The translations under genes and the position numbers were made by a program. Below, piece after piece: positions 9,801-13,335 of a stretch of DNA of 64,000 nt (position 1 is the stretch's first letter; each line of letters starts with the position of its first letter). Location: the sequence record MF498774.1, one strand, 5' to 3'. A model generated the notes under the pieces. It was not told the origin of the DNA, made no database searches, and saw nothing but the letters and a program-made list of their open reading frames with translations.

Positions 9801-10050
9801 TATGAATTTTTTAGAATCAGAAAAAGTAACTTGGGGTGGAAGAATATACCCGCTAGATATAGCAAACCAAATATGTTCTGTTCAGCCTATAGACCCTGAG
9901 CCATTTCGAAAACTATATGAGCGGGCTAAAGAGAACGAACGTATTAAGAATCGGCTTTCTAAAGCTTTTATGGTCCCTGTATCAAGGATCGACGCATACT
10001 GTGTAGAAGCATATCGACTTGGTATAAAAGAAAGTAAAAATAAAAGTTAA
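9790..10050 (+). CDS. Hypothetical protein
   Basis: ORF overlapping the upstream stop. Confidence 0.55.
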   Translation: MRNDMNFLESEKVTWGGRIYPLDIANQICSVQPIDPEPFRKLYERAKENERIKNRLSKAFMVPVSRIDAYCVEAYRLGIKESKNKS

Positions 10051-10087
10051 ACATACTTTCTAACTGTGATATGATGTTTATATAAAT
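10039..10087 (+). promoter_or_regulatory. Sigma70-type promoter for tRNA-Leu(TAA)
   Basis: GTTAAACA...TGATATGAT; near-identical copy at 11198-11246. Confidence 0.75.
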
Positions 10088-10089
10088 GA

Positions 10090-10182
10090 GCGTGAGTGGC
10101 GAAGTTGGTTGAAACGCATCGGACTTAAAATCCGATACTGCATAATGGCACATCGTGGGTTCGATTCCCACCTCACGTACCA
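10090..10182 (+). tRNA. tRNA-Leu(TAA)
   Basis: Cloverleaf, TCGGA-CTTAAAA-TCCGA anticodon arm, long variable arm, GTTCGATT, encoded CCA. Confidence 0.95.
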
Positions 10183-10417
10183 AATACGAGATGATAAACT
10201 CAAATTACTTTTGTTGAATGAGCTTTTTGGACGTTATGTGAGTTTATCATCTCTCAAATTCAATATGAGATGCTTAATATGAACGTATACATCAGAAATT
10301 ACATGTGTGGAGTCCTTTGGGGTAGTATCTTCAACGAAGAACACTGTAAAGGTAAATGTGTAAAGATTATGCGCGGTAAACATTTGAAGCCTTTCTATCA
10401 AAAATCGAGATATTAAA

Positions 10418-10807
10418 ATGAAAGTGAAGCTTGGGGCTTACAACCTTAATGAAAAAAGTTCTTTGGTTAATACGAACGGATTAAAATTCATTTTGAATGA
10501 ACAAGTTATAGATGAATTTTCTAAAAAACTACCTGTTCTAATCAATTTTGGTCAAAAATGTTTTAACATTGATAATGCTAAAGATACTCCGGATCCGGTT
10601 GGTATTCTTAATTCCATAGAAACTTACAAGAAAGATAATATCATTATTGTTACTGGTGATGTAGAAATAACCAATGACAAAGTATATGATGTTCATGGGT
10701 GCCTTCCTTCTTTTTGTGTCCGATCTTTAGCTATTCGTAACGGTGATACTTACAAAGTTGGAGAAATTATTGCATGGGATATGGAAATATATGAAGGTTT
10801 ATCATGA
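10418..10807 (+). CDS. Hypothetical protein
   Basis: ORF track. Confidence 0.65.
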   Translation: MKVKLGAYNLNEKSSLVNTNGLKFILNEQVIDEFSKKLPVLINFGQKCFNIDNAKDTPDPVGILNSIETYKKDNIIIVTGDVEITNDKVYDVHGCLPSFCVRSLAIRNGDTYKVGEIIAWDMEIYEGLS

Positions 10808-11202
10808 ATAAACATGATATTCATCTCATTGGTATTAGTAAGTTTATCAAGAAAGGTCTTACTGTGGTTCAATCAAGTTTGATCTTCAAACAAACCAGTG
10901 AAGAATGGAAAAATATCCATGGTGTTGATGTAGACAAGATTTATTGCTATATTAACAACGAGGGAAAGGATATCTACGCAATTGGTAGACTTAGATCCTG
11001 TTGCGGACCTTGGTTGAGTGTTAGTTGTCGGTCTCTCCGTAAAAAAGGTTATATAGCATTTGACTTTAACGATGAAATTGAGATACCATATGGTTCAGGG
11101 ATGAAAACTGCTTATAGGGTATTGTTTTCTGACACCCCTAAATACGAGTATGATGAAGAAGCTAGACATCCAGTCGCTTACTTCGAAAAATACTTCAAAT
11201 AA
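10804..11202 (+). CDS. Hypothetical protein
   Basis: ORF track; ATGA overlap with the upstream gene. Confidence 0.7.
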   Translation: MNKHDIHLIGISKFIKKGLTVVQSSLIFKQTSEEWKNIHGVDVDKIYCYINNEGKDIYAIGRLRSCCGPWLSVSCRSLRKKGYIAFDFNDEIEIPYGSGMKTAYRVLFSDTPKYEYDEEARHPVAYFEKYFK

Positions 11203-11246
11203 AAGTTAAACATCCTTTCTAACTGTGATATGATGTTTATATAAAT
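11198..11246 (+). promoter_or_regulatory. Sigma70-type promoter for the main tRNA run
   Basis: One mismatch versus 10039-10087; ends 2 nt before tRNA-Arg. Confidence 0.75.
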
Positions 11247-11247
11247 T

Positions 11248-11324
11248 GCGCTGTTAGCTCAGTTGGATAGAGCAACGTTCTTCTAAAGCGTGGGTCACTG
11301 GTTCGAATCCAGTACGGCGCACCA
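11248..11324 (+). tRNA. tRNA-Arg(TCT)
   Basis: Cloverleaf, loop CTTCTAA, encoded CCA. Confidence 0.95.
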
Positions 11325-11408
11325 CGGGATGTGGTGAAATTGGCAGACACACTAGATTTAGGTTCTAGCGCCATAGGCGTGACGGTTCGAGTCCGTCCAT
11401 CCCGACCA
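11325..11408 (+). tRNA. tRNA-Leu(TAG)
   Basis: CTAGA-TTTAGGT-TCTAG anticodon arm, encoded CCA. Confidence 0.95.
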
Positions 11409-11409
11409 A

Positions 11410-11485
11410 GCGGGTAAGGTGTTTATGGATACATGCAAGCCTTCCAAGTTTGAGTAGACCGGATCGTTACCGGCTACCCGCTCCA
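11410..11485 (+). tRNA. Atypical tRNA-Gly(TCC)
   Basis: 76-nt cloverleaf, loop CTTCCAA, encoded CCA; A8, U14, T-loop ATCGTTA. Confidence 0.85.
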
Positions 11486-11496
11486 AGATTTAAAAT

Positions 11497-11566
11497 TGAT
11501 GTGTTACAGCTATCAGCTCACCGTTGAAAGAATACGGATAAGTCGGCTCGACTAAAGAACATATCA
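11497..11566 (+). ncRNA. Candidate 70-nt four-way-junction RNA
   Basis: 9-bp closing stem plus three short arms, between two tRNAs. Confidence 0.5.
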
Positions 11567-11569
11567 TTT

Positions 11570-11646
11570 GGCCCCTTAGCTCAGTTGGTTAGAGCAACCG
11601 ACTCATAATCGGTTGGTCACTGGTTCGAGTCCAGTAGGGGCCACCA
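11570..11646 (+). tRNA. tRNA-Ile2(CAT), ileX-like
   Basis: GGCCCCT acceptor stem and body like enterobacterial ileX; loop CTCATAA. Confidence 0.9.
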
Positions 11647-11668
11647 AATTTTTGATGAGAGCTATATT

Positions 11669-11863
11669 ATGTCTGGTATAAAATCCATAATTGAAAATTG
11701 GTCAGTTGGTGATGGTATAATCCATTGGAAGAATGGACGCCATAGTTTAGTAGTCTTTGGGTTTGCTCCAAATGGAGAACCTGCCTTTAAGTTTAAAGGT
11801 AAGAGTAAACTTACATCAGTAAGACAGATCGAAAAATCCATAGTTAATGCATATATTCTATAG
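11669..11863 (+). CDS. Hypothetical protein within the tRNA island
   Basis: 64-aa ORF with SD. Confidence 0.55.
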   Translation: MSGIKSIIENWSVGDGIIHWKNGRHSLVVFGFAPNGEPAFKFKGKSKLTSVRQIEKSIVNAYIL

Positions 11864-12020
11864 TTGTAAGCTCTCACGAATTTAATGGTCGTTGACCTTA
11901 CGATAATAATGAAGCGATACAGAGTCCCATCGCTTCTAAAAATATCAAAAGGGATGTTGATGCGCGTATGTAGCCGGGTTATAATGACCAAGATTCATGA
12001 AGGGTGAAAGACCACCCTAA
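11864..12020 (+). ncRNA. Candidate structured RNA
   Basis: Consecutive hairpins, including GAAGCGAT/ATCGCTTC (11911-11936). Confidence 0.35.
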
Positions 12021-12027
12021 ATATCAT

Positions 12028-12105
12028 AGCGGGGTGGAGAAGTCAGGAGTTCTCGCCAGACTCATTATCTGGAAATCGGTGGTTCAAATCCACCTCCCGC
12101 TTCCA
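12028..12105 (+). tRNA. tRNA-Met(CAT), initiator-like body
   Basis: AGCGGGGTGGAG start like fMet; CCAGA-CTCATTA-TCTGG arm; encoded CCA; CCTAAATA at 12016-12023. Confidence 0.9.
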
Positions 12106-12106
12106 A

Positions 12107-12182
12107 TGGCGTGTAGTTCAGTAGGTAGAACAGCGGACTGTTAATCCGTATGTCGTGGGTTCGAATCCCACCTCGCCAGCCA
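12107..12182 (+). tRNA. tRNA-Asn(GTT)
   Basis: GCGGA-CTGTTAA-TCCGT arm, encoded CCA. Confidence 0.95.
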
Positions 12183-12188
12183 AATTCT

Positions 12189-12279
12189 GGATGTTCGGCT
12201 ACGATGGCGGTGTAGCGGCGGACTGTAAATCCGTTCCCTCTGGGTAAACAAGTTGGTTCGAATCCAACAGCATCCACCA
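12189..12279 (+). tRNA. tRNA-Tyr(GTA)
   Basis: GCGGA-CTGTAAA-TCCGT arm, long variable arm, encoded CCA. Confidence 0.93.
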
Positions 12280-12282
12280 AAT

Positions 12283-12430
12283 AGAAGAAGTTAGAAGACG
12301 TTCTGATAAAATCCTCGGAGACGATGCCCCCTTGCGGTTTTAAACCGTTACGGATAAGCACGGGGTAATCCAAATCAACCATTATAGGGATGTGGTCATC
12401 TGGTATGTAAAATACAGTTGGTTTGGAACT
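12283..12430 (+). ncRNA. Candidate structured RNA of about 150 nt
   Basis: 11-bp stem 12369-12379/12417-12427 plus nested stems; no + strand ORF. Confidence 0.45.
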
Positions 12431-12433
12431 TTT

Positions 12434-12509
12434 CGGTGATTAGCGCAGTTGGTAGCGCGTCTGGTTTGGGACCAGAGGGTCACAGGTTCGAGTCCTGTAT
12501 CACCGACCA
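12434..12509 (+). tRNA. tRNA-Pro(TGG)
   Basis: TCTGG-TTTGGGA-CCAGA arm, encoded CCA. Confidence 0.95.
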
Positions 12510-12787
12510 CTTAGCACAAAGAACGGGTAACGACGTATGCCCCGGAATAAGCCAGCCATAGAGAATCTGGATATCCTGAAACGTGCCTTTAGGTTTCAGG
12601 CGGGATTGGTAGTATAAAGACGATATGGTAACTACTCCTTGACAAGCAGGGTTGAACTTGAGGTAACTGTCCTTTACCAAACAACGAACAGATGGACAAA
12701 ATCAGTTGAACGTCCTTCCTCCTTGTGATAGCATGTCAACTACATTAGGATATAATCACAGTCTAACGATCCTGATTATAATCCGCT
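12510..12787 (+). ncRNA. Candidate structured RNA of about 280 nt
   Basis: Multiple 5-8 bp stems, possible pseudoknot, no + strand ORF, between two tRNAs. Confidence 0.55.
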
Positions 12788-12863
12788 GCCGAATTAGCTC
12801 ATCTGGTAGAGCACAGCCTTTGTAACGCTGGGGTGGTCCGTTCGAGTCGGACATTCGGCACCA
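12788..12863 (+). tRNA. tRNA-Thr(TGT)
   Basis: Cloverleaf, loop TTTGTAA, encoded CCA. Confidence 0.93.
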
Positions 12864-12869
12864 AATTTT

Positions 12870-13335
12870 GGATTCTCGTCAATAGTCCGGTCTATGAGAA
12901 TCGACGCTTTAAGTAGCCCACCGGTATTTGTAAAAAATCTAGTGAAAGCTAGAAAATAAAAACCGAACCCCGACCTCTCCCATTACTCAAATGGTGATGT
13001 AGGTTCCTTCCCTGTAATAAGGTTCTAGTCCGTGACGGGTAAAAGGTTACATAGGGAGTATTGCTTGTGAATGACCACTGATTCAAGCCATCACATAAGC
13101 TCGTCCGTTATGACGTTAAATATAAGGCTTAGATTCCCATAAGGGCCTAAGCGTAAAAGTAACGAGCAAGACCGTTTTGCAGGCGTAGCCCATTGGGGTG
13201 ATGATGTTTGTATGTTGGGCTCGGATAGCCAATGCTATTAAGTCCGGTGATGGTGCGACCGGATCGATTTACGGAACCACATCAACAAGTATGTGCCTTG
13301 GTGGTTCGACCTGCTTTGCAGCCGCACATGAAGCT
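12870..13335 (+). ncRNA. Candidate large multi-branched RNA of about 470 nt
   Basis: At least 10 nested helices found by hand, GAAA tetraloop, no ORF. Confidence 0.65.

Follow-up and report, generated by a model that had tools for sequence, protein, structure and literature searches.

Why does a phage tRNA array contain a gap of 278 nt with no tRNA gene in it? The gap lies at positions 12510–12787 of the stretch of DNA that we analyzed (64,000 nucleotides from MF498774.1, hereafter the window), between the genes for tRNA-Pro and tRNA-Thr. The region 10000–13200 is 100% identical to the Aeromonas phages AS-yj and AsSzw2, which are T4-like (Straboviridae, Emmerichvirinae), and ARAGORN identifies ten tRNA genes on its + strand, from 10090 to 12863. 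The original prediction, made from the sequence alone, was that the entire gap is a structured RNA that is bounded by the two tRNAs, with a possible pseudoknot or a switch between alternative folds. The boundaries were correct (Table 1), and all of the complementary segments that it listed are present where it placed them. (Two other gaps in the same array also lack tRNAs: 11647–12027, which is 380 nt, and 12280–12433, which is 154 nt. The first of these contains a 64-aa ORF from PHROG 21687, a family without a function.)

Folding energy is uninformative for this spacer, because neither the spacer as a whole (z = −0.05 on the + strand and −0.59 on the − strand, relative to shuffled sequence) nor its conserved core (z = +0.96 for the nested fold) folds better than shuffles. 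By this measure, the predicted helices are not above chance. Energy-based folding cannot see pseudoknots. The sole part that stands out by energy is the 3' tail (12700–12787, z = −2.51).

Sequence comparison divides the spacer into a conserved core of 188 nt (12512–12699), which begins 2 nt after the 3' end of tRNA-Pro, and a tail of 88 nt (12700–12787). The spacer is 84–100% conserved in the Aeromonas phages G2, P19, CC2, 65, 65.2, and avDM6, and in Aeromonas phage ZPAH1 the conservation is limited to the first two thirds. Also, a 63-nt central piece of the spacer matched jumbo phages of E. coli, which led to full-length relatives. By BLAST, the core is carried by Aeromonas phages; by Bragavirus and a related Straboviridae phage (Proteus PM2 and Pm5461, Shigella SdyM_006, and Morganella Mm5); by Novosibvirus of the Demerecviridae (Proteus phage 1); by Stephanstirmvirinae (Klebsiella KP13-16); by Asteriusvirus (121Q, PBECO4, vB_Ec-M-J, and others); and by Alcyoneusvirus (RaK2 and K64-1). 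One pattern scan of metagenomes found the element on three contigs. Contig L024 has two diverged copies, one on each side of a tRNA-Arg gene, and the covariance model described below finds one copy in the window and one in each phage genome tested. Two pattern scans of IMG/VR returned only known isolates and chance matches. Two pattern scans of 185,579 bacterial species genomes, which detect only copies that keep the chosen conserved motifs, returned 0 and 16 matches, and the model confirmed none of them.

None of the 4227 models in Rfam 15 matched the window except for tRNAs, and nothing overlaps 12510–12787 either at gathering scores or at E ≤ 10. In five other members, nothing in Rfam overlaps the element at E ≤ 1. 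ARAGORN found no tmRNA in the window, and the Rfam tmRNA models do not match the spacer. (In KP13-16, the gap between tRNA-Thr and tRNA-Gln, L013 319–552, has sub-threshold matches to the Rfam models for tmRNA, at 31.6 bits, and permuted tmRNA, at 23.4 bits.) In the databases and genomes that we searched, these comparisons show a family of RNAs that is restricted to phages and was previously unclassified; we will term it X. The motif may already be among the roughly 10,000 viral candidate RNAs in a catalogue from 2023 (PMC10690425).

The structure of the core is supported by covariation. Ten members from outside the Aeromonas phages, together with a hand-drawn nested structure that does not include any pseudoknots, were used to build a covariance model, which recovers every member at full length. 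We then counted covariation across 19 distinct sequences, for the nested helices and for three pseudoknots that are outside of the model. Standard pairs make up 96.8% of the pair cells (versus 27–38% with slid partners), both partners have changed in 33 of 54 pairs (versus 8–12 in the slid controls), and the covariation score is 0.452 (versus about 0.06 in the slid controls). Because the nested helices guided the alignment, their share of these counts is biased in their favor. None of 500 shuffles reached any of the observed covariation values. The pseudoknots are free of this bias, and they are 96–100% paired even though they were left out of the model. The original prediction had suggested a covariation analysis as one check.

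Table 1. Features of the spacer and of the flanking tRNA genes in the window
Feature	Positions	Strand	Evidence or remarks
tRNA-Pro(UGG), gene anticodon tgg	12434–12509	+	CCA encoded; ARAGORN; Rfam tRNA, 70.1 bits
Core of RNA family X, 188 nt	12512–12699	+	Full-length match to the covariance model, 69.8 bits, E = 3.5e-21
PK1, GCAC/GTGC	12514–12517 with 12583–12586 (P3 loop)	+	97% of cells paired
P1 hairpin, GGGTA/TGCCC	12525–12542	+	Both-sided change in 7/9 pairs; also in the MFE fold
P2 hairpin, CCAG/CTGG	12552–12570	+	Both-sided change in 4/5 pairs
P3 hairpin, CCTGAAAC/GTTTCAGG	12575–12600	+	Both-sided change in 6/6 pairs; 99% paired
Junction J3/4, CGGGATTG (family consensus CGGGNTTG)	12601–12608	+	Near-invariant in three alignments
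P4 hairpin, GGTAGT/ACTACT	12608–12636	+	Both-sided change in 6/8 pairs; 98.7% paired
H-type pseudoknot P5/PK2	12637–12660	+	Both helices 100% paired
P5, CCTTG/CAGGG	12637–12641 with 12647–12651	+	
PK2, CAAG/CTTG	12643–12646 with 12657–12660	+	
H-type pseudoknot P6/PK3	12662–12697	+	Ties down the 3' end of the RNA
P6, GGTAA/TTACC	12662–12666 with 12674–12678	+	
PK3, GTCC/GGAC	12669–12672 with 12694–12697	+	
Hairpin A, AGTTGA/TCAACT	12704–12741	+	Arms at 12704/12736; GGTTGA/TCAACC in relatives
Hairpin B, (T)ATAATCA/TGATTAT(A)	12748–12784	+	Arms at 12751/12773; ends 3 nt before tRNA-Thr
tRNA-Thr(UGU), gene anticodon tgt	12788–12863	+	ARAGORN; Rfam

Thus, the claim of a structured RNA between the tRNAs holds, but the structured unit is a covarying core of 188 nt with a lineage-specific tail of 88 nt rather than the entire 278 nt. 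Similarly, a pseudoknot had been suspected, and covariation supports three of them, but none is among the pairings that had been listed. Two of the listed helices, CCTGAAAC/GTTTCAGG (12575/12593) and GTAGT/ACTAC (12609/12631), correspond to P3 and P4, and both are confirmed by compensatory changes.

Along the core, the order of the elements is PK1, P1, P2, P3, J3/4, P4, P5/PK2, and P6/PK3. P5/PK2 and P6/PK3 have the S1-S2-S1'-S2' order of strands that defines an H-type pseudoknot, and in each case both stems show both-sided changes. We used a register-independent script to count the variants of each pseudoknot by lineage. PK1 has three complementary variants across the lineages (CCAC/GTGG, GCAC/GTGC, and CCTC/GAGG). 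PK2 has three fully complementary variants (CTAG/CTAG, CAAG/CTTG, and CTGG/CCAG) as well as three forms with G-U pairs. PK3 has six (GTCC/GGAC, ACCC/GGGT, ATCC/GGAT, GCCC/GGGC, TCCC/GGGA, and TTCC/GGAA), and the exceptions are one G-U form and one single mismatch. The loops are also conserved: the loop of P4 contains an invariant GACGATA (12619–12625), and the loop of P1 is a conserved 8-nt sequence (A-Y-G-R-Y-G-T-A), for which we found no tertiary partner when searching by eye. The stem of P1 is shorter in the Aeromonas phages than in other members, and the Aeromonas phages have a reduced form of P7, a small hairpin that most members possess. (RNAalifold proposed another 3-bp helix, closing P6, which competes with PK2. 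We dropped it because both of the copies on contig L024 break it yet keep PK2.)

G-U pairs are frequent, with 14, 18, and 14 sequences having them at three positions. Since a G-U pair would be an A-C mismatch on the other strand, the RNA is on the + strand, which is the strand of the tRNAs, and the element has the same orientation as the tRNAs. Overall, the comparative evidence shows that 12512–12699 (+) is a gene for a non-coding RNA, with a predicted compact fold of seven helices and three pseudoknots.

The 88-nt tail contributes two further hairpins, which are found in Aeromonas phages only. Hairpin A was among the pairings listed originally, and it has gained one compensatory change: an A-T pair is replaced by G-C in G2, CC2, phage 65, and avDM6. 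Its loop includes a pyrimidine tract, CCTTCCTCCTT (12714–12724), that resembles the anti-Shine-Dalgarno end of 16S rRNA, and CCTTCCTC is conserved among Aeromonas phages. Hairpin B is missing from ZPAH1 and from all of the non-Aeromonas members. Its arms are complementary as predicted (ATAATCA/TGATTAT), but the stem is invariant in the Aeromonas phages, so that covariation neither supports nor refutes it.

As originally noted, the spacer has no ORF on the + strand, and no reading frame is conserved among the members of the family. We rejected a protein-coding reading because most members have stops in all six frames. Nevertheless, hypothetical proteins are annotated over the RNA in phage 65 (65p135, L001 2353–2553), in 121Q (gene 129), and in Salmonella SD-15_S21 and SD-6_S16. 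As no frame is conserved, these CDSs are probably not real genes, and the identification of X corrects the annotation of several GenBank records. On the antisense strand, an ORF of 66 codons with a TTG start (12480–12680) lacks stops only in the window, G2, and CC2. In phages 65 and avDM6, it is interrupted by three stops, and so it is spurious.

The genomic context of X varies across the phages. Most copies are between two tRNA genes, which are tRNA-Pro and tRNA-Thr in the window, tRNA-Gly and tRNA-Asp in PM2 and SdyM_006, and tRNA-Leu and tRNA-Ser in Proteus phage 1 and KP13-16; in the latter two contexts, X fills the gap between the tRNAs. (In PM2, 7 nt separate the modelled core from the next tRNA.) In the jumbo phages, X lies between protein-coding genes, upstream of the tRNA genes. 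Because the flanking tRNAs differ by lineage, and because the jumbo-phage copies are between protein genes, these comparisons indicate that X is an RNA gene rather than a spacer. In vB_Ec-M-J, a sigma-70 promoter that matches 11/12 positions ends 3 nt before X, and a canonical transcription start would fall within PK1. (This near-consensus promoter, L002 1362–1390, consists of TTGACT, 17 nt, and TATAAT, with TG.) The ORFs near X belong only to PHROG families that have no assigned function, and no protein gene accompanies X across the phage lineages.

The distribution of X also indicates that it is accessory and mobile, because Asteriusvirus G17 lacks it and because the copies from Asteriusvirus and Bragavirus are about 91% identical. 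We noticed no other DNA similarity between the Asteriusvirus and Bragavirus phages. G17 is cleanly without the element and keeps the downstream tRNAs. Where vB_Ec-M-J has an intergenic region of 388 nt (L002 1366–1753), vB_EcoM_G17 has only 76 nt (L048 901–976), in which the promoter survives along with about 34 nt of X. From this comparison, G17 has naturally and cleanly lost the RNA together with the segment after it. Just downstream of the RNA in vB_Ec-M-J is a second conserved non-coding segment (L002 1594–1647), which is an 81% match to E. coli phages of about 77 kb (XT32, XT18, XT73, 1-6bf, and FH3) and may be another mobile RNA module.

Rearrangements are seen among the Aeromonas phages as well. 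tRNA-Pro and the RNA are separated in phage 65 by about 295 nt (L001 2207–2500), on which two small ORFs are annotated. As these nucleotides are absent from the window, what is conserved cannot be equated with the spacer, and the RNA would seem to move as a unit with the downstream tRNA-Thr. Aeromonas phage Aszh-1 has a rearranged copy (L007 1519–1717) that is fused at P3: its 5' domain has been swapped for a duplicated 3' tail and the 5' part of tRNA-Thr.

What might X do? We propose that X is a non-coding RNA of a new family that is freed from the tRNA array, is stable, and serves as an accessory factor in trans; taken jointly, we consider these proposals to be rather probable. X would be transcribed within the tRNA array. 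Its 5' end would be released when the 3' end of tRNA-Pro is matured (by endonucleolytic and exonucleolytic cleavage), and its 3' end by RNase P cutting at the 5' end of tRNA-Thr, as expected from general tRNA processing. The tail with its two hairpins could then be either kept or trimmed. The product is predicted to resist 3' exonucleases and the 5'-end-dependent RNase E, because both termini sit in pseudoknots (PK1 at the 5' end and PK3 at the 3' end), and so it would accumulate as a stable RNA. More tentatively, X might act in trans by binding or sequestering a component that is conserved in the Enterobacterales and Aeromonas hosts or, alternatively, a component that is present in all of the carrier phages. 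The target would probably be in the sphere of tRNA, translation, or RNA turnover, and X would not be a mere spacer. We suggest a role in trans because X has spread horizontally, is dispensable, has invariant loops, and has no co-travelling protein gene.

The strongest competing idea is that X works in cis as part of the tRNA operon, by guiding or insulating the processing by RNase E or RNase P, and that it has no role once it is excised. In variants of this idea, X keeps the transcript free of Rho sites or modifies RNA polymerase, like the put-type antiterminators. A role in cis would fit with the location of X, since every copy lies among tRNA genes or shortly before them and points the same way, and with the jumbo-phage copies, which are promoter-proximal and ahead of the tRNA genes. 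However, a generic spacer would not need the invariant GACGATA, the invariant CGGGNTTG, or three precise pseudoknots across six lineages. Also, the flanking tRNAs are different in every lineage, G17 retains its downstream tRNAs without X, and no antiterminator or leader family in Rfam matches the element. We consider a role in cis, in any of these variants, to be unlikely but worth keeping in mind. It is also rather unlikely, in our view, that X is a self-sufficient RNA of a new class, either catalytic or acting by RNA alone as a counter-defense or decoy against a host factor that attacks tRNAs or translation, which would be exchanged as a mobile cassette, as tRNA genes are, and might self-assemble as ROOL and GOLLD do. 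A more specific proposal is a new class of self-cleaving or catalytic RNA that frees itself or the adjoining tRNAs without host nucleases. A compact fold with multiple pseudoknots and invariant unpaired nucleotides is typical of ribozymes, and the 5' boundary of X is within 1–3 nt of tRNA ends, but no known class of ribozyme in Rfam 15 matches X, even at E ≤ 10, and as we read the structure, the strand order of its helices is unlike the HDV-like, twister, or glmS folds. Moreover, the jumbo-phage copies are not adjacent to tRNAs, the promoter just upstream in vB_Ec-M-J would make cleavage unneeded, and the two ends require nothing beyond the host's RNase P and RNase E, which leaves self-cleavage quite improbable.

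The original prediction also allowed for a switch between alternative folds. If X were a switch that senses a ligand or a tRNA, ATATCCT/AGGATAT (12571/12747) and the long-range GCGGGATT/AATCCGC (12600/12780) would compete with local helices and so regulate the downstream tRNA. These segments are indeed complementary, and they overlap P3 and hairpin B, but neither pairing has comparative support. The ATATCCT/AGGATAT pairing is found in only some Aeromonas phages, shows no informative change, and is missing in ZPAH1 and in the other lineages. The 5' arm of the long-range pairing, GCGGGATT, is the junction CGGGNTTG that is conserved across the family, but the changes in its partner are not compensated, and phages other than those of Aeromonas lack this partner. 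More broadly, the alternative partners are in the 3' tail, which is missing from ZPAH1 and from all non-Aeromonas members. An expression platform is lacking as well: the array has no terminator-like site on the + strand and no RBS, the next tRNA in PM2 begins 7 nt past the modelled core, and no riboswitch family in Rfam matches the element. A switch is therefore very improbable. Finally, X could be a spacer that has no function and forms hairpins by chance, or it could be a small protein gene, as one might guess from its unremarkable folding energy, from the hypothetical proteins in some GenBank records, or from the minus-strand frame that is open in the window's own subclade. Given the compensatory changes in 33/54 pairs, the conservation across unrelated phages, and the stops in every frame in most members, which already refute both readings, this is scarcely credible.

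Other RNAs that are not tRNAs are known from similar locations. RNAC (species 1) and RNAD (species 2) of phage T4 have been enigmatic since the 1970s. They are products of the tRNA region, and no biological role is known for them (PMC3014915, PMC9697503). Like X, they are non-coding, adjoin a tRNA, and are found among the clustered tRNA genes of a T4-type phage, on the same strand as these. In contrast to the 188-nt core of X, their lengths are 139 and 119 nt; a tRNA-like T-arm/acceptor sequence is present at the end of RNAC but is lacking in X; and RNAC and RNAD are proven transcripts, whereas X is predicted from sequence. Our family models (R1 and R2) found no candidate for X in the entire T4 genome, including the tRNA region, and we rejected homology between X and RNAC or RNAD as there is no relationship in sequence or structure.

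ROOL and GOLLD are pseudoknotted phage RNAs that are "often near tRNA islands" and have no known protein partner or function (PMC12286853). X is likewise encoded by phages, is near tRNA islands, and has multiple pseudoknots. It is much smaller, as ROOL is about 580 nt and GOLLD is often over 800 nt, versus 188 nt for the core of X. Also, ROOL and GOLLD are mainly found in other groups of bacteria and form nanocages, and their Rfam models do not match X. By analogy, X seems to occupy the same niche as RNAC and RNAD of T4 and, on a larger scale, ROOL and GOLLD.

Two more distant comparisons concern the arrangement and the maturation of X. The 3' UTR of tobamoviruses has consecutive H-type pseudoknots (the upstream pseudoknot domain) directly 5' of a tRNA-like structure, so that a run of pseudoknots immediately precedes a tRNA shape, as it does in X. 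However, the tobamovirus element is from a plant RNA virus, acts in cis on the genomic RNA, and is not homologous to X, and the downstream element is a tRNA-like structure rather than a real tRNA gene. In MALAT1/mascRNA, a cut by RNase P at a downstream tRNA-like unit makes the 3' end, which is protected by a tertiary structure. The resemblance to the maturation that we propose for X is an analogy of mechanism only: MALAT1/mascRNA is eukaryotic and uses a triple helix, whereas X would use a pseudoknot.

X thus adds a compact and very well supported family to the non-tRNA RNAs of phage tRNA islands. It is shared, at high identity, by lytic phages from six taxonomic groups that infect Enterobacterales and Aeromonas, and yet it has been lost in a close relative. 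X is small enough for structure probing, crystallography, or cryo-EM, and it is dispensable enough to be cleanly deleted. As its carriers are cultivable (they include phages of E. coli, Proteus, Klebsiella, and Aeromonas), the role of non-tRNA RNAs in phage tRNA arrays becomes directly testable.

As for existing transcript data, metatranscriptome contigs from RNA libraries over a 701-letter stretch cover the two tRNAs only, and these come from other organisms. One contig of 216 nt, from a run only tentatively labelled as RNA, covers tRNA-Pro plus 140 nt at the 5' end of the core.
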